A stretch of 64,000 nt of DNA from Penicillus capitatus (taxonomy: Eukaryota > Plantae > Chlorophyta), in assembly GCA_965649825.1 (NCBI GenBank), contig OZ287696.1, forward strand, positions 165,001 to 229,000, in the 5' to 3' direction. The notes under the pieces are model-generated. The model ran no database searches, was not told the DNA's origin, and worked only from the letters and a program-made list of their open reading frames with translations. The first letter of the stretch is position 1. Each line of letters starts with the position of its first letter. The position numbers and the translations under genes are program-made. Shown here piece by piece: positions 13,993 through 59,706 of this stretch.

Positions 13993-14113
13993 GCAGAGGG
14001 TTGGCTGAGGCACTGGGTGCGTCAGGAGAGCGGCAGAGGGTTGGCTGAGGCAGCTGGGTGCGTCAGGTGAGCGGCAGAGGGTTGGCTGAGGCGCTGTTTG
14101 CGTCAGGAGAGCG
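13993..14113. repeat. Tandem minisatellite, 3 x 40-41 bp
   Basis: The unit GCAGAGGGTTGGCTGAGGCA(G)CTGGGTGCGTCAGGAGAGCG occurs three times with few changes. Confidence 0.95.
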
Positions 14114-17256: not shown

Positions 17257-20200
17257 ATGCAAAGGACGACCAGCCGTCGTACTGGCGGCCTGGGGCGAGC
17301 GGAAGCGCCTCCTTTGAACGAGAGCGTCACCATTCCCCGCGCCCTGTCAGACCGTGTGAATCATCTCATTCAAGGCATACGTCCAGGACGGGCCTCCGAA
17401 CAAAGACGACACGGAATTGCTGATTACGTTCGACGTCTCATCGTCAAATGTTTCCAACCCGAACACAAAGCAAAAAATTTTTGACGTAACTCCCGTGTCC
17501 ACAATGACGCGCTCAGGTCGAGGCGTTTATGTTTGGTTCGGTGCCGCTTCGAACGTACTTACCTGATGGAGATATCGACGTATCCATCTTCTGTGAGGCA
17601 AAAGGTCTTCAGGTGGGTCGCACTCTTGAGGAAGGGGGTCCTGAGTCAGATGACAGGAAACGTGGTGCGATAAATTGTCGACAGTACTGGAGAGCGAGGC
17701 AGAAAGTCCAGATGCAGAGTTCAAAGTGGCGAACGTGTCCCTGATCAATGCAGAAGTGCGAGCATGGAAAGATGATGTGACACATGATTGTTGGGTGATG
17801 TGACAGGTGAAGCTACTGAAGTGCCTTGTCGATAACATCGTGGTGGACGTATCATTCAATCAGATCGGAGGTCTCTGCACCCTCAATTTTCTAGAAGCTA
17901 TGGATCGAAAAATCGGTGGGAAACATTTGTTCAAGAAGAGCATCATTCTGGTACAAAAGTGTGACCATTGTGTGAGAAATGATCATTGGCTGTACAGATC
18001 AAAGCCTGGTGTTATTACGAAAGCCGCGTTCTGGGAGCACAGCATTCATTGCTATCGACGTATGCTTTGGAAACGATGGTCCTGCACATTTTCAATGTCT
18101 ACCACTCCGAGCTCCAGACCCCCCTCGAAGTCCACAAATATCGCCGTTACGCGTAAGAGCATTCTAAGATCGCCGCTGCTGGTGTAGGTTCTGTATAAGT
18201 TTCTGATCGTATTTCATCATTTCCAGTGGGACGATTATTGCCTGACCCTGTCTGGACCTGTCAGTCTGAAAGACCTCGACATCAATTCAGGTGCATACAG
18301 CCGAGATCGCTGTTGGAAGTGTGAGATCAATGTGTGATGTGTTGTGGCAGTGAATGTTCCTACCGAGCATGGAAAGACGTTACTCATTCCGACGTTTATG
18401 AATGTTATGCTGGAATCCTATTCCTACACACCAGTTGTGCCTGCCAATAGCAAAGGACCTGGATACCCCAAATACATGAACATCATGGATCCATTACTAC
18501 ACAGCAATAATCTCGGACGCAGCGTCTCCAAAACGAGCGAGATTCGCATTCGTAATGCGTTTGGCCATGGAGCGCGTCTTCTGAATCAGATCTTCAAAAA
18601 AGCAAGCGCCAACTGGATACATTCTCTTTGCTGATCTGTGTGGCGTGATGTGTATGTGTAGGAGATCACAGAGGCGACCGACGTGCTGGATCAGTTTTTC
18701 AAGAATACATGGCTGGCTCAACAGCGACCGAGATCATCCCCACAACCCCAGATCCCTCGTCCTCAGCCCACACAGGCAATGCCATACAGTGCTCCTGCCG
18801 CAAAAACCGGAAACGGATTGCTGGATCTACTGAAGGAGCCGCATAAAGATCTGACCGAGATGCACGAACGCGATGCCATCTCGCATCTTTATAGCATTGC
18901 TGGATACCATGGAGGAGGACCCCCTGCAAACGGCACTCTGCCTGTCCAAGTCGCTGCGACGATGGGAACTGCCTTTCCACCACCTCCGCCTCGAGGGCCA
19001 GAGGACAAACCTGCCGCACAAACGGCCGCTCTTCGGGGGTCCGAAATGGAAAAGCTTGGCAGGCAGCTCCATGCTGCACAGCATCTACGGAATCCGTTGG
19101 AGATGCCATCTGCAAAGAACGAAGCGGGGGCACAACAAGCTTTCAATGCATTTGCCCAGGCACACCTCGAACTCGCCTCCGCTTATCAGACGTCCATCTA
19201 CAATCCCTACCATCCTGTCAAGTTCCTCCCCCAGCAGAACGCAGCGCATTTGCAGAGAGGTCGTATGGAAGGCGGACTCCAGAGGACGCGTTCGGAGCCC
19301 AATATCGGCGATCTCTGTCCAAAGAAGAAGGACAAGAGTACAGTGAAGCGCTATCAGGCTCCGTTCCATGTTCAGCATCCCAAGACATTTACTTCGCAGC
19401 CTCTGGCGGATGAGGAACATAAAGTCATGAAGCCCAAGGAGCAACCATCTCCCGTTCAGAAGCAGACGTCGACAGGTGGATCTGTTCTTTGTGCCAAGGC
19501 ACTGGACGTTTTGAGACCGCTTCCCGGAAAGAAGGAGAAACCGACCTCCGTTGTCAGCAGCCTCGAACAACTGAAACTGAAAGACGATGTGCTGGAGAAA
19601 CTAAATGTAATGGAAAGAAGACGCAAGGCAGCGGAGAAGGAAAAAAATTCAGAGAGCTCTGAAGGTGAAAAGGACCCTCCTCCGTGCCGCGACACGGACG
19701 AGACTTCTTCCAAAGAGACAGAGACGAAGGAGGAAACCACAGCAACAGCTGAAAAGACAAGATCTGGAACAGCAGATGTGCCAAAATCGATGCTGCCGAC
19801 ACACAGCGATGTCCATGATCAGTCGATCGTGATCGGAGAGCCACCCGAGCCGCCATCTGTGGATTATCATCAACGCATGGACCGTGGTGAGTTTTTTGCG
19901 GCACCCCGTTCCTTGAATCGTCGATCGGGTCGTCCATTTGATTTGCATCACACCAACATGCACTCTGCGGAAATGCGCAATTCTTTGTTTCAAATGGCCC
20001 AGGGACAGCGACAGCAGCTTACGAGGATGGGCCTGGGCGAGCGGCAGATGCAGGCAACTGTTGAGATGCGGCCAAACGGCGAACTCGTGCCGTCATTTAC
20101 GCCTGTCTATCCTTACATCTTCAATGCCGCAGCAGGGAATCAATTCTCTCAGACGCCACTGTACGGTATTCTCTCGGCACAGGGAGATCTCACAGCTGCT

Positions 20201-23200
20201 CAGATGACCCCTGCCCGTGCCGCCGTGCCAACAGCTGGAATACGTCATCCTGCTGTTGCCATGCCCAAGGCAGACGCGCGTAATGCTCTGGTGGATCTTT
20301 TTCCCAATCCTCATCAGCCTACTCAGTGGTTCCGTCCGGACGTAACTCCAACGACAGATCGGCGAATGAATGGAGGTATTCCGCTGACGCTGTCCCCTGG
20401 ATGGACCACTCCTTACACGACTGTGAATCTGAACGGGTCTTCGCGGCCACGGGAAGAGATTCCGGTCCGCGATTCCGATGATGTCTTATCGGGAGACATC
20501 GAGACATTGACACAGCACTTGGAAGTGGCACGCAATTTCATTGGATGCAAAACATCTGTGCCCTCTTCAGATAAGGAACGCAGCAGTCGGGCCTCAAGCG
20601 CTGGACAGACACCCGAGAGAACAAGACCCAGTACAGGACATCGCAAGGGCACACCCTCTCCAACTTTGACAAACCGACAGGAGAGCAGGAGCAGTTCACG
20701 GGAAAGACTTCCAAAGAACCAGATGGAGAACCCATCGATCTATAATCACCCTCCTCCTGTGCCACCAGGTGGTCCGGTAGGGTATCCTGGCAACTATCCT
20801 GCGCAGCCACCCAATGTGCTCTATCAAGTGCCGCCTGGTCTTGTGACACATCCGCCGCCGCCGCCAGGTGCCGTGCATGAAAGAATGTCGAATGAGAATG
20901 AGCTTCTGGCGCAGTTGCATGGCAATGTGAATCTGGTCGCAGCACCTGGATACAGTTATCAGGGATCAGTGCGCGGCGTCCATCTTCCGATGACACATGT
21001 GAACCTCGCCAATGGAGTGCATCCGCAAGGAACGATGCCGCATCCCACGACGGTGGATCCAGCCAATCTCCAACTTCCTCCTCAGCCGCCACATTCTGCC
21101 TCTCCTGCTCGCGTCAAAGATTCTCAAGTCATTCGCAGTACCAAAGCGCCTGGTGGGAGTCGTCCCATGACAGCAGAGGATCCTCAACGACCGATCTCTT
21201 TGCTGACAGATGATGGTGGTATAACGGTCGAAATCGATAACTCTGTGTTACAAGCGGTCAAGGCAGCCATGGCAGAGAAGGCATCGGATGAGCATCAAGC
21301 ATCAAGAGATCCCAACAACCGGACGTCTCAGGGCGATCCTAACTCTCCAAGGCATGGCACAGAAGAGACAGTACATCTGAGAGGCGGCGCCGCCGTCGCT
21401 GCCGCCGCCGGTCTCCCAGATCCTCCGATGCATGGTCTGACAAATAGAAGACAACTGGAACAGGGGGTCATCTGTTACTCTGAACCTAAAGACTTCTCAG
21501 CTCAGTCCAATCGACATCCGATGGGAGGAGAGTTCAACGCCGCAGGAGCAAACGGCCATTTGGCGCATTTGTTTACGTTGTCTGCTCCGGTAGTGACAAC
21601 ACCATTGCCTACCGATCTTCCGATCCCTCCCAGAAGTGCGTGTGTGAGGGAGATGCGAAGATGCTTGATACAGGGATCTGTTTTTAGCTGGCATGGCATC
21701 CTATGGAACGGGAAGCTTCATTCCACGAAACGCCCAGTATGTGACAGAACAGCGAAAATCACGCGAACAGGCCGAGAAAGATGCTCAGGTAACACATAGC
21801 ATGGTAAAGACGCAGGGCGCCTCTACCTGGAATGTCCTTGGAGGCGACGACAACCGAAGGCAATACAGAGGATGGTTGGAGTACTCGTTCCGGATCAAAC
21901 GCTTCCGAAAAGACAGAACAGGTAGAGAACCGGAATCACCCACGCGGCAGGTAGATCGACGGTTGATAGATCGATGTACTTGTGTGATGACTGTCTGCAC
22001 TGTGATGCTCAGGTTTTCTCCCTCTAACCATCAGCAATGGTCGTCCTCTGCCAGTTCGAATCGTTCCTACACGCAAACGCCTCCGCACAGCTACGGTCAG
22101 GTTGAACAGGGACGTCCGATGTCGAATGGGGCCAACGATTCCTGGCAGATTAAACAAGACCGTCCAGGTCCGTCCTTCCACTTCCCGCATCCCGGAATGA
22201 GGGTACCGCCTTTAGCTATCACAAGTGCTGGCGATCTGAGTGAGTATTACAAGGCCTATGGTGAAGTGGCGAATGCCTTTGTGTCCACAGAAGCAATGGG
22301 TCGCGTACCAAATCATGGAGCCACCTATATTCCCTATCCCAACGTCGCAAGTCAACCCCCTTTCCAGCTCGATATCTCCGATATGACCATAACCGTCACA
22401 GGTTTGCCAGCACACCAAGGTTATGCGGAATTCCCGACATCGATGCCAGCAACAACGCCTGCCACGACGTTTCATCCTTCGAGTGTTCCACCCAGACCAG
22501 GGCTCGGACATGGGACACACAATCAGAGTAAGGGAGATGGACGTGCATACGCTCCTGATGTGACGTGTCTCTGCTTGGGCAGATCCACCAAACATCCCAC
22601 GTAATCGCAGAGATGGAGAACGATGGAATACAATGGTTCGCAACGACCGTTCCTCCGTGGATCGCAGTTCCACTCCGGATAGTCTCCACAGTCAAGGACT
22701 GGTTCGTCGAGGCATGGAGAGTGGAAACAGATGGGAAGGAAAGCAATTGATACGCAACGTGCCCAATCTTCATCTGACGCAGCAGCGTCCCATGGATCCA
22801 CTGTTCAAGTCCGTACGAGACGGAAGCTCCGATGATGATGGTGGTGTGCATTCGGGTCGAACCAATCTCGAAACGCTCTTCAATCCTCGGCCTCCTTTTC
22901 GGGGACCGCCTCTTAACACCCGACACCAACGCCATCGACGACCAAGTCCAAGAGACGACCGATCACGTTTCCCTTTGAAAGATGCCGATTTCCCATCGTT
23001 GGAATCGGCACGCGGTGCGAAACGTTCACCCACGCCATCCAGTCAGTCAGAGACACCGAAAGGGAATGAAAAGCCTTCCCACGTTTCAGGCCGTTAGATA
23101 TACTGCTTCTGTTTTTGATGAGGATATGTGTAATCTCTGTGTGTAGCGGACAGCCCTGTCAAGTACTGTTGAGGGATCTTTGTGTGTCTACCTCCCTCCC

Positions 23201-30528: not shown

Positions 30529-31132
30529 TCAGTAACGGAATCGGCGTCTCTTGGCACCTACAGCCATATCGCGAACACCGTCGTCACCCCAGTAGTCTCC
30601 GTAATCACCGTCATCGTCGTCGTCATCGTCATCATCTGCGGCTTCGTTAGTTGTATCGTTTTCTGTATCCGTGCCGTTGGCTGGTGCACCATCCTCTTCA
30701 TCATCTGTAGTCGGCGTCGTGCTGGTATCAGGAGTACCCGGAGGGGCACTGGCAACCGGCGCATCGTCGCCGTCATCTGGATCCTCTGGACTGGGAGTTA
30801 CGGAACTGGGAGGCATCGGACTCGCCTCCTCCTCCTCCTCCTCATCATCATCACCATTCGCCTCAGAACCCGGAGTTGCTGGAGGGCTGGGAGATATAGT
30901 CGGAGTTGGGGAGGGGACAGTAGACGGAGTCGGAGTAGTCGGAGAACTGCTGGGAGACGGAGTCGGGGATCGGACAATCGGCGATCTGGTGGGAGATGGA
31001 CGCGGAGATCTGCTGGGAGACGGACGCGGAGATCTGCTGGGGCTAGCAGTAGGTGGACTTGGACTCAGAGTGCCATCGTCGCCAGGTGAGTGATCGTCGT
31101 CGTCGTCATCATCATCATCGTCATCGTCGTCG

Positions 31133-31166
<34 letters not shown>

Positions 31167-31665
31167 CATGCCTGTGTACGTGAACATGCTCGCCTAACTC
31201 GTCATCATCGTGCTTGTGCACGACGTGGACGTGTTCGCCGTCGTCGTCATCATCGTCGTCGTCGTCATCATCGTCATCGTCGTCGTCGTCGTCGTCGTCA
31301 TCGTCATGGTCATGGAAGAAGTGTCTGTGTTTCGTCAATGTGCCGTTTGTCTTGCGATTACTGGTTGTGACGTTTCTGAGTTCAGATGCTCTTTTAGTCC
31401 CACTGACTGCAACCACGGATACGTTCGTGCTAGCAGATGCTGTGAGCACATCATCTTCATCGTCGTCGTCATCATCGTCATCATCATCAACCGGTGTCTC
31501 GGCGGTGGCATTAACATCACCTTCTTTCAGTTGGCGTCCAACGATGCTCTTTGTCTCTGCGCGGCCTCGAAACACATCCAGCCACTTTCTGCCACGCACC
31601 GCTACATACACAAACGCAACTGTGATACCAAAAGACACAAAAGATCTTACGCCGAGCTGAAACAT
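30529..31665 (-). CDS. Secreted highly acidic protein with poly-Asp tracts, His-rich motifs and a Ser/Pro/Thr-rich linker
   Basis: An uninterrupted 378-aa ORF with a hydrophobic N-terminus (FVSFGITVAFVYVAVRG) and an RQLK motif. It has three poly-Asp runs (two longer than 20 D), HVHVVHKH and HVHVHRH motifs, SPSRSPRP repeats, an acidic tail and a basic end (KRRRFRY). Confidence 0.75.
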
Positions 31666-33392
31666 GAGAAAGAAACACGACGGCGAGAAAGAGAAGCACG
31701 ACGACGAGTCGGCGTCCGGGCATTATGCAATCGTCGGCAGCCAACACTGGCAGCCAAACAAATCTCTGTGCCGACTGCTTTAGAAACAAAACGCACAACT
31801 GCGTTAATTCTCGAAGACGGATAACAGATTGTAGAAATGGTCGATCCGCAATGAACACGAAAACGGAGAATAAAATTGCTCCTGCTGTGTCACCGAAATT
31901 GAATACCATGACGCGATTGCTATGGTGATGCCAGTTTCGTGACCACTGCTCTCCATGCATTCGAAGTGAGAACCTCTCTGGCTGATATGGTAGATTCACT
32001 GTCATGTCAGGGAATGTATCTGTGCGAAGGACACACTCTGCTTCACCTCCTTCACTGTCATGCTGCCTCGCACAATGCACACGGTAATTGCGGACGACAT
32101 GCGAAGGGTCTTCGTTTAAGAAGACATGTCCTTATGGTTTAAACTCGAAAAGAAGGTCACGCTCTTTGAGAAGGCAGCCGCCGCCGTACAAAAGAAGTTC
32201 TGTACTTGAACACCGTTTTACTCGTCCGAGCGTGCATGCATGCTTACTCCTAGGGTTGCTAGGAACGAGACAGGCGTCTGATCTCTGTTTTCTTTGTTGT
32301 GTTTACCGCCGCTACGTTCGTCTTCGAAAACGGCGGTCAAGAAGCGTCGAGCCGTTCATCATTTGCATTCGTTGTACGAAACTCCATGAAGGAATTCAGT
32401 CTTCTTCTGATTCTGAATCCATAACATCTGTTATGTCAGTAAAGGACCGCCGAAATTCTCGCAGTCCCTGACAGACAACATGGAAGACGCCAACCATTTT
32501 CGAAAGACGTTCACTCGACTGAAGAAAGGGCGTCTTTTATGTTCTCCCAGACTTTATCTCTTCGCTGAAATCGTTGATCTCTGATTGCCAAGTGGTTTGT
32601 TCCATTTCAATTACGCAACTGCTGTTTCTTGGCTGATGCCTCTCGGAGGAATGCGTTCTGTTCCCTTTAATGGGATCATGCTCCCCTACCTTTTATCTTC
32701 CAATCCGTGGATGCTGCTAATGCGCCACATTGTTAAGTCATCGAGAAAGATAAGACGTCGTCTCGTGCTCTAAAGAGGTAAAGACCTGCTAGATCTGATG
32801 TCATTTTAAGATATGTCGCTTGGAATTGCATTAAAAGCAAAAACAATCGTCGTCGTACTCTCTATTCGAAGATTAGCATAGTACAGTCAGTGACATTATG
32901 TTGCGACTTCCTATTCGCGGAAGATTTCGTGTGATGGGTAGCTCACATTTTGTGTAAGATCGATGTCTGTTGTCAGCGCGTTTTCATCAAGTATTGGATA
33001 GACGTCGGATGCTGTTGAGTGGATGTCATATTTCTGTCCGGGAAGAATTTCTCGACGATTATCGATAACGCGATAGTGGTTCCGCCAGAGGTATACTCGG
33101 AGTGAAAAACTACACATCTTCAGTTCAACTTTTGCGATAGGTCTTCGCGAGAATAATCAGGGAGCTGAATAATACGCGAATGCCTTAGTGTTTATCCCAC
33201 AAGGCAACAACAGCAAATGCCATTGTTGAAAGAATGCTAGCGCAGTGCTGCAATGATGCAAACAAATAAGCAAGTAAAGGCAACTCAGGAAAGTCCTGAT
33301 CAAGTTGTGCAACTGGTGATCTGTAAGAACACGACTCCTTCGGAGTCTTTGATGCGTTCTCACCAAGAATCATCTCTAATAAAAAATCGCAT

Positions 33393-34302
33393 CTAGTAGT
33401 CATCGCTTTCATCATCTTCGCCGTCTTCTTTCAAGAGTCTGCGGCGGTCATCATCATCATCATCTCCTTTGCCGTCTTCGGTCAGAAGTCTGCGGCGGTC
33501 ATCGCTTTCATCATCATTATCGCCGTCTCCGCCAAGGAGTCTGCGGCGGTCATCATCATCATCATCTCCTTTGCCGTCTTCGGTCAGGAGTCTGCGGCGG
33601 TCATCATCATCATCATCTCCTTTGCCGTCTTCGGTCAGGAGTCTGCGGCGGTCATCATCATCATCATCTCCTTTGCCGTCTTCGGTCAGGAGTCTGCGGC
33701 GGTCATCGCTTTCATCATCATTATCGCCGTCTCCGCCAAGGAGTCTGCGGCGGTCATCATCATCATCATCTCCTTTGCCGTCTTCGGTCAGGAGTCTGCG
33801 GCGGTCATCGCTTTCATCATCATTATCGCCGTCTTCGGTCAGGAGTCTGCGGCGGTCATCGCTTTCATCATCATTATCGCCGTCTCCGCTCAGGAGTCTG
33901 CGGCGGTCGTCATCATCACTACCATCATCTGGGCCTTCTTCTCCGCTCAGGAGTCTGCGGCGGTCGTCATCATCACTACCATCATCTGGGCCTTCTTCTC
34001 CGCTCAGGAGTCTGCGGCGGTCGTCATCATCACTACCATCATCTGGGCCTTCTTCTCCGCTCAGGAGTCTGCGGCGGTTGTCGTCACTTTCATCACCATC
34101 ATCATTATCGCCGTTTCCGCCAAGGAGTCTGCGGCGGGCGTCAAGATCTTTCACGCTGATGGACTCTTGTAACACTGTGCAAGGCGAAAAGTCAGCGCGA
34201 AAGAGGAATCTACACGATCTTACCTCTCGCGGTGACTTGGACTGAAAGAACGAGTCCGATAAGAATAACAAAGTTCAGGCGAAACGCAGCCATGGCAACC
34301 AT
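33393..34302 (-). CDS. Secreted polyprotein of 14 acidic peptides, each preceded by RRRLL
   Basis: Exon 1 (34302-34224) encodes the signal peptide MVAMAAFRLNFVILIGLVLSVQVTA. A 49-nt GT-AG intron (34175-34223) joins in phase to RVLQESISVKDLDA, followed by 14 RRRLL-acidic units ending KEDGEDDESDDY-TAG. Confidence 0.85.
33396..34136. repeat. Coding tandem array, 14 units of mostly 51 or 57 bp
   Basis: AG(G/A)AGTCTGCGGCGG recurs on the plus strand every 51-60 bp. Several units are identical, including synonymous positions. Confidence 0.97.
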
Positions 34303-36089
34303 CTTCGCTTGGCAACACTTAGTCTCGTAAGTTCAAGCAAAAGAAATCCTTCGAACAGCAAAAACAGCCGATCTTATAGTCCCTCTACAGCAAAGTCTGA
34401 AAAGACCGCTCGCTCACTATGTGGTTCTCCAGAGCCGTTGGATACTCCGGGAAGCTTTACTCATCCATGACTAACACACGTCCCATCCTTCGAAGCCTCC
34501 TGACCAACCGTTCGCTTTTAGCAGCTTCCCATCTCGCGCTGGTAGGAAGCAGCGACCTCGTCCACGCACGCGTTTTCTGCACGTACCTCCGTCTGTTGGG
34601 TTTTCCGAACCTCGAACCTCGCGTTTTTCTGCTTTCTGACTTTATAACTCTCTGACCTGTCCCATCTTCGCAGATCTACTGAGTGTACGTTCGAGCATGT
34701 TTCGTGTTTCTTTCTTCGCGTCACGAGGCGCTGCAAAGCAAGGCAGATTTCGTCGAACGCCACAAGCGGGCTGACCCGTGGCTGCTTAGTGCTCTCGGGC
34801 GCAACTTCTGCGGCTAGAAAAGCTGTCTTCTAAGATCTTGCCTCGACGAGGCCCGTTTATCTTCTACGAAACTTAAAAAGCGAGAAACTGCACGATGTTT
34901 TAAGACGATCGTGAGTCGGACTTCGGCGAAAACGAGGATCGCCGTCGTCCTTTGTAATATGATGCGTACGTTCCTTGGCCTGTACTGTCTCGCCGAGCAC
35001 TGCCGTAAAGTGGTGCACACGACGAGCCGCGTCTACGTTGCGTCGTGCTTTTTCGGAAACGCAGTGCGACTTCACTCTGCGTGCTGTTGCAGTTTTTCAT
35101 GTCCATGCGTCAAAAGCTGACACGAGATGTCGCAGAAGGCGCTTCCACGAAGCACGCCCCTTCGACCGTACAGCAGCAACGCTTAGACGAAAACTGAGGA
35201 GATGGCGACGTTTTACCTGTCCGTTAGGGTGGACACCGTTTTTCTTCCTTCCTGCCCGAAGTCCAAAAATAGAAGCTGAGAATTGCAGCCAGCCAAGCAA
35301 CATGTTGCAGTTTTCGCAGAATGAGGTATGTGGTGCGGGATCGATGACCAAGAATACCAAGCACCAGCCGATGGCGGCAAAGTTGAGTCATTCTTTCCAA
35401 ACGGCATGATGGAATGTGGACCTGTCCTTCGCCGAAAGCCTCTAGGACAGTGAGAAGGTTCACGATCACTATTACCAACGCAGGCAACACTGACATCCAT
35501 CACAGTCATCCTACTTCTGGCGAACCTCTCGTCTACTTTGCAGAATAACATACCGTGCTGCCGGAGTAGGAAGTTCTCCATGAGTCTGGATCTGCCATTT
35601 GACGCACGTCGAGTACGTGGAGGAGATGTGTCCCGCGTGGGGAGGGTGGAATCTGTAACACTTTTCAGCTGATCTATCGTATCCCTTGCCTACACAAGGG
35701 GTTTCTTTAGTCTGTGTCAGCAAGCTGCGGACCTGTAGTTTGATATGGCCGATGAGAACGTGGTCTACGATTGACACTGTCTACTACCTGAGCATGCATC
35801 TCAGACAGAATCCCTGAACTGTCGAGCACAAGTTTCAGTCTATCCAACAGAGAGTGAGACGGCACAAGTGACTCCGGAGAAGCCGGCTGCAGCTTTCGCT
35901 ACACGGTAAGCTCCACGCGAGAGGTAACGTCCGTATTCCAGAGGCATCATCGTAAAATCAAGTGTGCATTCGGAATATGGGATGCAGCTGTGTCGCACAG
36001 AGACAAATGCTCTCGGTAATCGTCACCCTTCCAAATGATACCTGGTTACAGTATTCGAAGCCAAAAGGCATTCGTCGCCAATCCAGTCC

Positions 36090-37916: not shown

Positions 37917-40462
37917 TCAATCGTCTAAGTAATAGAATGTCCCAGCCAGTTTTTGCTCTTTGTCTTTGACCGATTCATGTTTGTTAATTCGCGGTCGATA
38001 GTTTGTTGGGTCGCGTCTAAAGGTAATGTCTAGATTCTCAAGAAAGAGATTCATTCCCGTCTGTAAGGACTGAGGTCGTAAAGCGACGGCCTCGACAGAA
38101 GGTTTACCCTCATAAACCACAACTCTACAACAGGCCGTTCTTGAAGAATGGCATTGGCAGGTGTTGATTGGACGATACCTATCGGCCATATAGGTTGCCA
38201 TGATGAAGTCATGCTCCACCACAAATGCTGTCTTCTTCGCATGCATAACAAACCGTTTGATCACTTTGGCTGCAATGATACGCTGCTCCGAGTCCATGTA
38301 AGCACTCGGCTCGTCAATCAAGTAAAGATCGGCTGGCTGACCAAGAGCGAGAACCAAGGCAACCCTTTGGAGCTCGCCACCTGCAACGCGTTTTGCAGAA
38401 AGCTAATGCACGCAAGAGACAGGACCTGATAAATTCTGGACCTCCTGGTCCATCAACTGTTCAATGGACATCGGCTTCATGACATCTGCATTAAACTGTG
38501 GGTGCAGATAGGATTCGCGAATCTTCTTGTGCAGCAGGTCTCGCACAGTTCCCTGAAACTTTGGAGATATCTTCTGTGGCTTGTAGCTCACCTAAAGGGC
38601 ATTTCTCTTGTATGGCGATGCATCAGGTCGTGTGGCTTGCATTGAATTCTGGCAGTTTGATGTCTTCGTTTCCGTCTTTGATGACTTCGGATTCCGTCAT
38701 ACCGGCCAACATCCGAATGAATGTTGTCTTTCCTGTTCCGTTCTCCCCAAGCATAACAATGATCTCCGAGTCCGAGAACTCGCCGGATTGAACCTACATA
38801 CACAGCAAGAATAGCAAGGAGGATTTTCTGTGCTCTGTAAAGATGGCTTTGCGCTTTATGTACCGTCAGAGTAAACTGTCCCTGCTTTTTCCTGAGGCTG
38901 GGATAGCTGAAACTCTTGAATCTCTTCAACTCTTCCTTCTCTGCCTGGTCTGTCACTTTGAATGTCAGCGCTTCCTCTCGGAATCGAAGATTCTCCGTGG
39001 GGATGAAGCCAGAGAGGAATATATTGATGCCATCTCTACAGAACACGACATTCATTGGCATCGCTCCTTATGCGGCGAGCACACACTCACCGAACACCGA
39101 AAGGCAGTGTCACGACGCCATAGGCACCAGGAGTGCCATAGAGACAGCAAATGAAGTCTGATAAGTAATCCAGCACACTCAGATCGTGCTCGACGATAAT
39201 CACATAGTTGTCGTGCTGCACGAGCCCTCTGATGGCCCGTGCTGCATTCAATCTCTGACGAACGTCCAAGTAAGAAGACGGCTCATCAATCATATAGATA
39301 TCTACAGACAGTCACGATCTCCTTCACTTCTGTCCATCAGCAGCAGCACCTCCTCGTTGTGCAGCAATCACGCCGATCGCGAATCTCTGAAGTTCTCCAC
39401 CCGAAAGGACGCTCACGTCGTTGTCCAGTATCTAAGCAGCAGTCATCGTGAAGATCTCGCACGTTCGGCTGTTCGACAGACCTGTTCCAAATCCAGTAAT
39501 ACGAGCAGTTCTTTCACGGCATTTCGTTGATCCTTGGCACTGAGCACTTCCTTTACAGTGCCTCTCACCTTAAGATGATTCATCAAAGAGACAAAACGGG
39601 GAGATCGTCTGTTCTTGCCGCTTTTGGAATGTGGTCGACGTATTGAGGTTTGACGATGGCGTGCAGATCATTTTCCAGTATCTTGAGGAAATAGTTCTGC
39701 AGCTCCGATCCTCTAAAGTACGCCAGAATGTCTTCCCAATCTGGAGGATTCTGCGACATGCACGCTTCTTAGCACAGAGCTCGCCATCGGCGGTGTCTAC
39801 TGTAAAGCGTCCGAGATTCGGTTTCAGTTTCCCTGCCAAAACCTTAAGCGCGGTGCTCTTGCCTATGCCATTCGTTCCCACCAATCCAAGCACTTGTCCA
39901 GGTCTCGGAACTGGAAGCCTACAGCACAGCGCCGCCATGAATTGCTGGACATACAATAACAGATCTTGCGTGCCGCACCTGTGTAGTTTAAATGAGTTCG
40001 GGCCGTATCGATGGGTCGTCTGCTGTTCCAGGTTCTTTGGCAGATTGATGATGCGTATGGCATCGAATGGACATTTCTATCAGAAAACAGAGCTGTGTTC
40101 TGTCTCCTGGTTTACATTGGGCATCAACTTTGACGCAGAGACCACAACCGATGCAAAGCTCTTCGGAAATGAACGCAATTTTGGAAGTGGCTGTCACCTC
40201 AATGCACAGTTTCCCTGCAAAGACACCGCCATCGTATGCCTCTATCGAGCAAAGATTGAAGAGTGGGTACCCGTTTTTACAACCGGACAACATTTTCGGC
40301 ATTCCTGTCTGCACTTCTTCGGCTTGCACCTAACAAACATCGTGTGATGGGGCTAACTAAGATCCCTCCGTTTGGCGTTGCTCTTCACCTATCTCCGTTG
40401 ACAATGGCAATACGTGTCAATTGTTCGCCATCTTTAGATTCCTTCTTTTTCTTCGGAGGCAT
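37917..40462 (-). CDS. ABCE1: ABCE1/RLI1 ribosome-recycling ATPase (2 Fe-S, 2 ABC domains), multi-exon
   Basis: Motifs seen: [110 protein letters not shown]. Confidence 0.97.
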
Positions 40463-56847: not shown

Positions 56848-59706
56848 TTAAGTTGTTGGATACTCTTTTCTGCCGCAGATGACGTTTCCCTCTTTGTCAT
56901 AGATGGTTTTTCCCTCAGAAGGGGGTGGACATTCTGGCCTCGATGCCGTCTTGCCCAATCGACTGGAATGACGGTATCTCGTTTCAGGCCCTTTCCAGTC
57001 AATGCCTCCAAACCACGAAGCAGTGGTCTTCTTGATATCGTGTTTGTAGACGGAACGTCGAACATCTTCTGTGCATCTCGATTTGGCCGGTGGTGCGTGT
57101 TTGCAACGCCGGCGTTTGTGGTGAATGGCAGGTGTGTGTGGTCGCTTCGGCGCAGATTCCGTCTTCTTTTTCTCTGCATGGTGATGCGGTTTGGGAACGG
57201 GTGAAACGGGCAAAATGCTTGGCTGGGGTTCCGGTTTAGGAGATTCTGGTTTTGGTATCTTCGATCCGTGCATTTCCGGAATATCAGCAGAAGCATGAAC
57301 GTCATGCTTTTCACCAGTTCCAGGTGCATCGGGACTGGTCTCAGTAGGAGCGACATGTGGATGCTCCTTTTCAGGCGATGGCTCTGGACTTGGTGCCGTA
57401 GATTGCGGAATTGAGTAACCGTGAGTCTCTCCACGTTTGGAATGGGGAGGTTTTTCATGAACGCCACCACCGCCTCCTCCGCCAGCAGCTGCGGATGCCG
57501 GCTCTGTACCCACTGAAGGTCTTGGTTCTTTGGAGGCTGTACCGCCACCTCCGCCGCCACCGCTACTGCCTCCGCCTCCACCACCGCCACCTCCGCCGCC
57601 ATCTTTGCCTCCTCCACCGCCTCCCAATCTGTCTCCAAATCCTCTGGCATACCCACCACGAATTGTCCCGCCGCCGCCTCCTCCGCCACTGTCTCCTCCT
57701 CCGCCTCCACCAGCTCCGCCTAAGAGTATATAAACATCGTTTGATTGCATGTCCATCAAGGGGCACTCTGAATCGCACCTTGGAAGCTGCTGACTCCTTC
57801 GCCGCCTCCACCGCCGAGGCCACCACTGCCAGAACCGAGTGCTCCTATTGTCTTGCCCATACCTCCGCCTCCTCCACGGCGACGGCGAACGGCACTTACG
57901 GAGGGTCCGCCATGGCCTGATCCAATTCCCCCTCTACCACTGCCACCTCCACCTCCTCCACCGCGACCTCCTCCTCCACCGGATCCAGATCCTTCGACCG
58001 AAGTCCCTCCGCCGCCTTTCGGCGACCCTGCACCCTCTGATTGTCCTCTGCGACCTCCGCCGCCACCACCCCCGCCACCACCGGAAATGTCTTCTTCTTC
58101 GCACAGAAGACCACCACCACCTCCGCCACCAGCACCTCCGTGTTTTTGTGTTGAGGCCAATCCGGAACCAGATCCGATCTTGGAACCGCCACGTCCTGTG
58201 AAGTGAGAGATTGGGATCGCATAATGACGTTCGGTGCAAAGACGCTTACCTTTTGCTTTGGCTCTGTGAGCGCTTCCGGCCCCGCCGCCTCCTCCTGCTC
58301 CCCCTCCCCCTCCAGCTCCTCCATGCGAAAGAGAAGTCCCTCCGCCGCCAAAATAATCGCCGCCACCAGAAGCGGTCCCGAAATGTCCAGCACCTGCGCC
58401 ACCTCCACCGCCGCCAGAGACCTTCGAATCTTCAAAGTCGATAAGGTGACCTCCTCCACCACCAGCCCCTCCACCGCCTCGGCCAGATTTCACAGCCCCT
58501 CCACCGCCTCCGCCTCCTCCAATAACCATTGACTGAGCACCTCCGCTGCCTTCGCCATGCGAACGCTGACCACCTCCGCCCCCACCTCCGCCGCCTCCTG
58601 TTCCGCCACCTCCACCAGAACCGCTGACTCCCTTTCTTCCACCGCCAGATGCATCGCCACCTCCCCCAAAGCGACTTCCTCCGCCACTACCGCCTCCACC
58701 TGATCCACCACCTCCACCACCGCCAGATCCACCATCAACACCTGCTCCGTGATCTATGCCTCCACCTCCGCCACCGCCACCTCCGCCCGGATCACTGCTT
58801 CGTCTTCCTTGCCCTCCACTTCCTCCACCGCCAAGGATATCGCCGCCTCCGCCACTGCCTTTGCCGCTCGGTCCACCTCCACCAGCACCGCCACCACCTG
58901 ACAACAACCAATCGTCATGCGAAGTCTAACATACAGAACACCGGTTCTTTCGTCCATTACACGTCTCTACGAACAGACGTCGCCAAAAGCGTCAGAAGGT
59001 GACGTCTGAATGGTGCATGAGTCTATCTTTACTTCCAGAACAAAAACATTCCAAGATATACCTTCAGCACCGCCTCCTCCCCCTCCGCCTCCTCCACCGC
59101 GACTGCCGCTCTGGGATCCACCACTTCCGCCTCCGCCAGTTCGGTCTCCACCTCCTTCTCCTAGTCCTCCTGGACCTCCCCCGCCTCCGCCACCTCCACC
59201 ACCATGATCGGCGCTGCTTCCTCCTCCGCCGCCGCTACCACTATGCGTGTCGCCTGCACCACCTCCGCCTCCTCCACCTATCATGGTCTTTTATCATGCG
59301 ACAGTGCAACAAGGCGTTGTCGATCGCACCGAGGATTCCTGTGCAATCGCAGTGCTTCTTCTTGCATTCATTAACGGCGACCGCCGAAGTGGACTCGCAA
59401 CAAGTGCAATGCTTTTCTCGCTTCGACCAGCGGTGCGTTTTGGCTGAAAACAGACGACATGCTAAAAATTCGTAAAGAGGTAGCACCGAAAGACACCTGA
59501 AGTGCTTTGGCTATGAAAAATGAGGGTGACCTACAAAAAGGCACAACAGTTGGGGGGAGTGGTGAAAGCACGATACTATGTCGTAAAAAGGAGATGTGTC
59601 ACAACGACAAACTTACCAGCACAACCCAGAATAGTCCTATGGCAGGCGGACGCGATCTGCGCCCTTTAGGCGCCTGAAAAGAGAAAACAGAGATTAAAAC
59701 AGACAT
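56848..59706 (-). CDS. Secreted glycine-rich protein with a Cys-rich N-terminus and a Pro/His/Lys-rich, Cys-containing C-terminus, multi-exon
   Basis: Minus-strand Gly-rich ORFs (58967-59284, 57756-58907, 56848-57759) are joined in phase by GT-AG introns (e.g. CAAG/GTGCGA...CTTAG/GCGGA). Predicted upstream exons give AIGLFWVVL/VTLIFHSQSTSA-CRLF...HCTCC...CKKKHCDCTGILG. The 5' structure is tentative. Confidence 0.65.

Follow-up and report, generated by a model that had tools for sequence, protein, structure and literature searches.

A repeat-encoding gene on the minus strand

We analysed a stretch of 64,000 nucleotides (nt) of contig OZ287696.1 from Penicillus capitatus (GenBank assembly GCA_965649825.1, positions 165,001 to 229,000), referred to here as the window. 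On the minus strand of positions 33393-34302 lies a gene whose product consists of a predicted signal peptide, a short pro-segment and a tandem array of Asp-rich units, all of which start with RRRLL (the RRRLL gene). When this strand was read and spliced in a script, a protein of 286 residues was obtained. Exon 1 (34224..34302, minus strand) begins with the ATG at 34302 and encodes MVAMAAFRLNFVILIGLVLSVQVTAR plus one base. It is followed by a phase 1 intron of 49 nt (34175..34223, minus strand; GTAAGA...CACAG), and exon 2 (33393..34174, minus strand) contains the pro-segment, 14 repeat units and the stop codon. The latter, TAG (33393..33395, minus strand), stands immediately 3' of the last core (…ESDDY). 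The original prediction had described a spliced signal peptide, a pro-segment and 14 RRRLL-delimited acidic units, and this was confirmed to the residue, with an identical list of units. An intron length of ~50 nt is normal for this genome, since the neighbouring ABCE1 gene carries an intron of the same size class (54 nt).

The predicted signal peptide (MVAMAAFRLNFVILIGLVLSVQVTA, with R as the first residue after the cleavage site) is encoded within 34224..34302 on the minus strand. Its n-region is basic, the hydrophobic core comprises 13 residues with a mean Kyte-Doolittle value of 2.7, and V-T-A occupies positions -3 to -1. The pro-segment of 13 residues, (R)VLQESISVKDLDA, is encoded at 34137..34174 (minus strand) and separates the predicted signal-peptidase site from the first RRRLL.

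The array itself occupies 33396..34136 (minus strand) and is composed of one unit of 60 nt, three of 57 nt, nine of 51 nt and a last one of 51 nt. In order, the units read GGNGDNDDGDESDDN, SGEEGPDDGSDDDD (three times), SGDGDNDDESDD, TEDGDNDDESDD, TEDGKGDDDDDD (five times), GGDGDNDDESDD (twice) and KEDGEDDESDDY. Each starts with RRRLL (codons CGC CGC AGA CTC CTG/CTT/TTG) and continues with an Asp-rich core of 12-15 residues, giving unit lengths of 17, 19 or 20 residues and always a multiple of three nt. The cores contain 47-67% Asp+Glu and have a net charge of -7 or -8. Asp makes up 50% and Ser 7% of their residues, and every core contains one or two Ser/Thr. Tandem Repeats Finder reported the array at 33409-34078 (period 51, 12.8 copies, score 702). 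A degenerate three-motif RRRLL pattern matched 12 times at the array, whereas 100 shuffles of the window that preserved its dinucleotides gave no match, and no second RRRLL array was found elsewhere within the 64 kb. The protein is clearly of low complexity and disordered, and no Pfam-A family matched it.

Conservation in a sister species

An orthologous locus was reached via the ABCE1 exon of the window, which is 95% identical to an exon on a contig of 1.39 Mb from ENA assembly ERZ26696514; the locus taken from this contig is referred to as L123. Positions 1-20561 of L123 are collinear with window positions 48534-27625 (~20 kb) at ~85% nt identity, and the shared gene order is IRE1, zf-CCCH, LRR, RPL13e, ABCE1, Memo-like, the RRRLL gene and a gene for a poly-Asp protein. 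The start, signal peptide, intron position and stop of the L123 gene are all found at positions homologous to those of the window gene. Its signal peptide (MVAMDAFRLTFVILVGLFVSVQASAR) is predicted to be cleaved between MVAMDAFRLTFVILVGLFVSVQASA and R, with a canonical A-S-A. In both species the N-terminus shows typical n-, h- and c-regions and a small-x-small site. The pro-segment of L123 (VLRNSVSVEDLEL) is identical to that of the window at 6 of 13 residues. The intron measures 50 nt in L123, has GT..AG borders and differs by small indels, while the exons stay in frame. As the orthologous frame holds only when these 50 nt are removed, the intron is supported. The coding sequence ends with …DDDDR-TAA, homologous to the window stop.

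The flanks of the gene can be aligned as well. Alignment A1, which runs from the 5' flank through exon 1 and the intron to the start of exon 2, shows 87% column identity and covers 34303..34440 of the window (minus strand), probably the 5' untranslated region (UTR) and core promoter. The 3' flank at 33150..33392 (minus strand), probably the 3' UTR, is likewise alignable with the L123 orthologue; in alignment A2, which comprises the 3' flank and the last array unit, column identity is 82%. A TGTAA poly(A) signal was found neither in the 3' flank of the window gene nor in that of L123.

The coding potential of the array is not restricted to one strand. Three or four of the six frames are open across it in each species, codon-usage scores do not discriminate between them, and the gene callers behind public collections did not deliver the window protein to the collection that we searched. 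The array might thus be a non-functional minisatellite that merely looks coding, or the real product might be encoded on the plus strand, where a Ser-rich open reading frame (ORF) runs from 33469 to 34245. We consider this very improbable. The Ser-rich ORF on the antisense strand does not begin with an ATG and spans the array in L123 only partly, the other open antisense frame lacks any start codon, and unit lengths are always multiples of three. We assigned the gene to the minus strand because the ATG, the signal peptide, the GT..AG intron and the stop are homologous in both species for this frame only. We therefore take the gene to be genuine and conserved, and regard the L123 orthologue as the decisive evidence.

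The L123 array consists of seven units of 18 residues each, six starting with RRRLL and one with RRKLL, and the cores read SGGDEKDDEDDDD or SEDGKK[ED]DDDDDD (55% Asp, 8% Ser). RRRLL is hence found in 20 of the 21 units of both species. Whether units of one array or the two arrays are compared, codons of the motif differ only synonymously (CGC/CGT, CTG/CTT/CTC/TTG) or by an exchange of R for K, whereas in the cores every variable codon column alters the amino acid. Nevertheless, the net charge of the core lies between -6 and -8 in 21/21 units, despite varying sequence and a length of 12-15 residues. Selection thus appears to keep the charge of the cores and not their sequence. Two core types, [ST]EDGK[GK]D6 and xGGD..DDE.DD, are common to both species, indicating that the array is older than their split; with 14 copies in the window and seven in L123, it has expanded or contracted since then. 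Taken together, the architecture of this conserved, lineage-restricted gene strongly suggests a battery of poly-Asp peptides diced from one precursor by a protease.

Such peptides could in principle be ligands, the precursor being peptide-hormone-like and comparable to plant RALF/GLV or to prohormone-like precursors of Chlamydomonas. The combination of a signal peptide with multiple basic sites is indeed found in the latter (PMC6313938), and S1P sites are present in plant peptide precursors. In addition, the only Pfam match of the L123 orthologue was GLV1-2 on its N-terminus, a non-significant one (E = 0.5, 11.8 bits, cut-off 28.1). However, the core sequence is unconserved both between units and between the sister species, with charge alone conserved. 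The residue preceding RRR is D or N in both species and never G, so that there is no Gly for amidation ahead of the basic site, and neither Tyr nor Pro nor Cys is conserved in the cores. The orthologue lacks the DY with which the window copy ends. A signalling role is therefore quite improbable in our view.

Genomic setting and searches for relatives

The neighbours of the RRRLL gene in the window are eukaryotic and include IRE1, an LRR protein, ABCE1, a Memo-like protein, Sec61-alpha, TPS/TPP and copine. The TPS ORF shares ~60% identity with land-plant TPS1 and 56-57% with chlorophyte proteins; in EukProt it has a match at 60% with an accession, GHUV, from a Scenedesmaceae transcriptome study. 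For the ABCE1 exon, the best named match is Chlorella variabilis (70%). The host had been called a green alga from the DNA alone. With the best named matches of both TPS and ABCE1 in Viridiplantae, this label seems reasonable. Synteny with L002 (Logan SRR33785046), which comes from a more distant relative, is kept for Sec61-TPS/TPP only and then broken, and two more ABCE1-bearing contigs, L124 and L125, were too short or not syntenic.

The last exon of ABCE1 lies at 37917-38357 (minus strand), where the ORF reads through the in-frame 54-nt intron (GTATCG...TGTAG). Prokaryote-style calls on this contig hence include intron-encoded residues, which lowers apparent cross-species identities. Several further features of the window were recorded. 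An uninterrupted ORF of 1038 residues without Pfam match at 18683-21799 (plus strand) is unusual among genes that are split by many introns of ~50 nt. Two long ORFs at 57756-58907 and 56848-57759 (both minus strand) are extremely Gly-rich, with G runs and scattered S/A/R, and lie where the GC skew is strong (-0.30); they may represent a glycine-rich protein of the wall or RNA-binding type, or simple-repeat DNA. A tandem repeat of 40/41 nt is present in three copies at 13993-14113, with 91-92% matches.

Directly downstream of the RRRLL gene, at 30529-31665 (minus strand), lies the gene for the poly-Asp protein, which has 378 residues in the window and 399 in L123 (16412-17611). This protein combines a hydrophobic anchor at the N-terminus with stretches of poly-Asp (roughly 10 to 30 residues long), His-rich blocks of the type HxHxH, an HRGP-like block rich in (S/T)P and several N-x-S/T sites; its C-terminus, KRRRFRY, is conserved. 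No Pfam family matched it, and the gene may work together with the RRRLL gene.

The His-rich neighbour could bind Zn, and this bears on another use to which processed peptides might be put, namely as anionic host-defence peptides. Ovine lung surfactant contains Zn2+-dependent poly-Asp antimicrobial peptides, and the core of TEDGKGDDDDDD, with GDDDDDD, resembles them. Runs of six or seven Asp after G or K close five of the window units and the units of L123, and a fast change in copy number between sister species (14 vs 7) is common for defence genes. Yet the resemblance is compositional only, and no such algal system is described in the literature that we searched; we regard a defence role as improbable.

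To find relatives, the spliced protein was first compared with protein collections. A word-indexed search gave no match. An exhaustive phmmer search against 1.84 billion representatives gave 44 matches, all of them spurious and periodic (HEAT-like, neuropeptide-like and other repeats) with the exception of one protein, P0129. These negative results are weak, as the window protein, its L123 orthologue and two ORFs from the L123 gene caller are all absent from the collection searched; in a local phmmer run, the true L123 orthologue scores 88.5 bits (E = 1e-19). The neighbouring poly-Asp protein is likewise absent from the searchable collection. Metagenome contigs were covered at the DNA level. 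A scan for related loci yielded 600 pattern stretches, none of which was confirmed by tblastn, and low-complexity masking may explain this outcome. The three-motif DNA pattern returned at least 120 stretches; among the matches listed there was no relative, each being a simple repeat rich in Arg/Leu in which Asp+Glu did not exceed 12%. Searches of this kind seem to miss eukaryotic proteins of extremely low complexity systematically. It may be that the family is restricted to a small clade, or just that current pipelines do not detect it.

P0129 is encoded at positions 266-1276 of L126 (Logan SRR31730562), a genomic contig of 1351 bp with a GC content of 48% and one intron of ~90 nt. It has an N-terminal domain of ~200 residues without assigned family, followed by a C-terminal tail of seven units of the form RRxR[NK]L-G[GE]YGPDDDDD (~16-17 residues each), and the protein ends with RRFLKRRNFGGY. 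It is the sole database match with a comparable periodicity of basic-Leu and poly-Asp blocks. Unlike in the window protein, however, the repeats are attached to an unrelated N-terminal domain, and the motif is RRxRxL. P0129 is best treated as a possible analogue, since homology is indistinguishable here from convergence.

Proposed processing and comparison with known systems

We consider a protease-delimited pre-pro-polyprotein that yields polyanionic peptides acting in bulk to be the best reading of the locus, although we hold it with a confidence just short of even. According to this proposal, the signal peptide would direct the precursor into the endoplasmic reticulum, and a Golgi endoprotease for basic-basic-Leu motifs would cleave at each RRRLL. 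This enzyme would most likely be a subtilase of the S1P/SKI-1 type cutting after R-R-L-L, with a kexin-type convertase cutting after RR(R) as an alternative. Exopeptidases would then remove the basic/hydrophobic remnant, in the manner of the RRIL/RRNL ends of diatom silaffins, and 14 short polyanions (12-15 residues, 47-67% Asp+Glu, charge -7 to -8) would be released, or seven in the sister species. Extracellularly or in a secretory compartment, these peptides might serve to bind or buffer divalent cations (Ca2+, for example), or to steer the assembly of mineral or wall polymers. Bulk polyanion action is the most likely function because the charge of the cores is kept and their sequence is not; a specific role as receptor ligand is less likely. 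We infer secretion, cleavage, trimming, the identity of the protease and the polyanion function from the sequence, and any phosphorylation of the peptides or role in Ca/CaCO3, silica or wall formation would be hypothetical as well.

The motif agrees with what is known of S1P. Arabidopsis AtSBT6.1/S1P prefers R-(R/K)-X-L or R-(R/K)-L-X, and the human enzyme R-X-(L/V/I)-X (PMC7162652). R-R-L-L is present in 20 units of the two species and R-K-L-L in one, so the view that RRRLL is a motif of the S1P/SBT6.1 type was borne out for RRRLL and RRKLL alike. A proven plant S1P site, RRRAL in CLEL6, is cut in the early Golgi (PMC7162652), and subtilases of the SKI-1/S1P type occur throughout Archaeplastida (PMC6713707). 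RR[RK] ahead of every core in both species would also fit the di- or tribasic sites of repeat precursors. Green algae possess prohormone-like precursors, subtilisin-like convertases and CPB-like carboxypeptidases (PMC6313938), so that RR(R) cleavage followed by trimming would be an alternative route to the same cores.

Other motif assignments were rejected. The cytosolic acidic-dileucine sorting motif [DE]xxxL[LI] matches DRRRLL but is irrelevant for a luminal protein. An RxLR or PEXEL motif gave no in-register match, and Tyr-sulfation at the terminal DY was discarded as DY is not conserved in L123.

The same array could also function without being cut. As an intact protein, secreted or residing in a secretory compartment, it would be a blocky polyampholyte (blocks of +3 and -10, net charge ~-61) acting in high-capacity Ca2+ binding, in the wall matrix or in coacervate formation, and RRRLL would serve structure or charge patterning and not as a protease site. 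Intact Asp-rich matrix proteins such as Aspein and Asprich are well known from animal biominerals. A strict alternation of basic and acidic blocks with constant block charge would be conserved under this model too, and the adjacent gene (30529-31665) is also extremely Asp-rich, as well as His-rich and Ser/Pro-rich, without any protease-site periodicity. On the other hand, charge patterning alone cannot explain an invariant R-R-[RK]-L-L amid freely varying acidic blocks. The motif fits two independently described cleavage motifs of the secretory pathway, and its first copy directly follows a short pro-segment, as in processed precursors. On balance, an uncut protein appears unlikely, though it deserves serious consideration.

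The conservation data also contain points that weigh against a processed polyprotein. The two species are close (~85% nt identity), which leaves the between-species motif test with little power: per 15 nt of motif about two differences are expected, and two were seen, both synonymous. Because the units are young and homogenised, they cannot be counted as 21 independent observations. Finally, with several frames open across the array, codon usage cannot tell sense from antisense.

If the precursor is indeed processed, it would provide a natural 14-site substrate for a protease of the S1P or RXL type in the green lineage. It would also make defined poly-Asp peptides, a class used experimentally to steer CaCO3 crystallisation, available in genetically encoded form, and it would illustrate selection on per-peptide charge and on the cleavage motif, with drift in sequence and copy number. 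A bolder proposal is that a green-algal lineage independently evolved a dicing of one secretory precursor at many S1P/RXL-type sites, as in diatom silaffins and silacidins, into poly-Asp peptides (in place of phosphoserine peptides) that control cations, mineral or wall, possibly together with the adjacent Asp/His/Ser-Pro-rich gene. We regard this as doubtful. If true, it would extend protease-delimited peptide batteries of the biomineral type to Viridiplantae, and S1P would gain a role in bulk polyprotein dicing that is not known in plants. In limited literature searches, we found no description of a green-algal polyprotein precursor giving poly-Asp peptides, in line with the earlier remark that no such architecture was known from chlorophytes.

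Diatom biosilica proteins, fungal Kex2 repeat proteins and animal neuropeptides all provide examples of polyprotein precursors with repeated motifs at which a protease cuts. In diatoms, the precursors of silaffins, silacidins, cingulins and frustulins carry RXL at their repeat ends; these sites are cleaved, and the residues RRIL/RRNL are missing from the mature peptides (PMC4557024). This agrees with the earlier statement that silaffin and silacidin precursors are tandem peptides released at RRIL/RRL motifs. The protease acting at the diatom sites is still described as unknown. Among the closest systems are the silacidins A-C of Thalassiosira pseudonana, which share with the window protein a signal peptide, a precursor that is highly repetitive, peptides of strong acidity and RXL-type repeat ends (PMC4557024). 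RRRLL contains both R-L-L and R-R-L, in 14 units behind a signal peptide. Silacidins are Ser/Asp/Glu/Gly peptides of ~25 residues that are about 60% phosphorylated, and owe their acidity largely to this phosphorylation (PMC11733937), whereas the window cores have 12-15 residues with one or two Ser/Thr, and Asp accounts for 50-55% of the cores in the two species. Silacidin homologues have been reported from centric diatoms only (PMC5649158). None was found in any search made here, in which the silacidin sequence itself was not directly compared. The designation as silacidin-like therefore holds as an analogy in architecture. As a statement of membership it does not, given a host of the green lineage and cores that are Asp-rich and not Ser-rich.

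Silaffin Sil1p of Cylindrotheca fusiformis (peptides R1-R7) offers a parallel for the boundaries. Its tandem peptides are each bounded by a removed RR-x-L tetrapeptide, RRIL or RRNL, and an RXL site is also found after the signal peptide and pro-region. However, its peptides are rich in Lys/Ser and become polycationic through polyamine modification, whereas those of the window would be polyanionic, and the window motif is RRRLL and stands N-terminal to each core (equivalently, C-terminal to the previous core). The plant substrates of S1P/SBT6.1, namely RALF23, GLV/CLEL6 (with RRLR and RRRAL) and the pro-regions of pectin methylesterases, have the same class of motif in a secretory precursor. 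In these proteins one or two sites serve to remove a pro-domain, compared to 14 sites in the window protein, and what is released is a folded protein or a specific ligand, in contrast to poly-Asp peptides.

Fungal Kex2-processed repeat proteins and yeast alpha-factor share with the window protein a signal peptide and many short peptide copies between basic sites, and their peptides are trimmed by carboxypeptidases. The same layout and trimming are known from animal and Chlamydomonas prohormone-like precursors (PMC6313938). Their KR/RR sites, in contrast, have no obligatory Leu-Leu, and their peptides are conserved, whereas the window cores are conserved only in charge. Neither sequence-conserved products nor a Gly before the basic site, both typical of kexin and prohormone precursors, were found in the cores.

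Siliplant1 (Slp1) of Sorghum and the Asp-rich matrix proteins of biominerals are secreted, as the window protein is predicted to be, and share its repetitive, disordered character and its blocks of charge. In Slp1, some of the repeats end in RXL motifs, and the protein has His/Asp-rich domains (bioRxiv 10.1101/518332), which are paralleled by the His/Asp-rich gene adjoining the RRRLL gene. It differs in being basic (isoelectric point 9.3) and Pro/Lys-rich, has three RXL sites only and shows no sequence similarity. Overall, the RRRLL gene would resemble a silacidin or silaffin precursor in the way it works, as an analogue that is a member of neither family.

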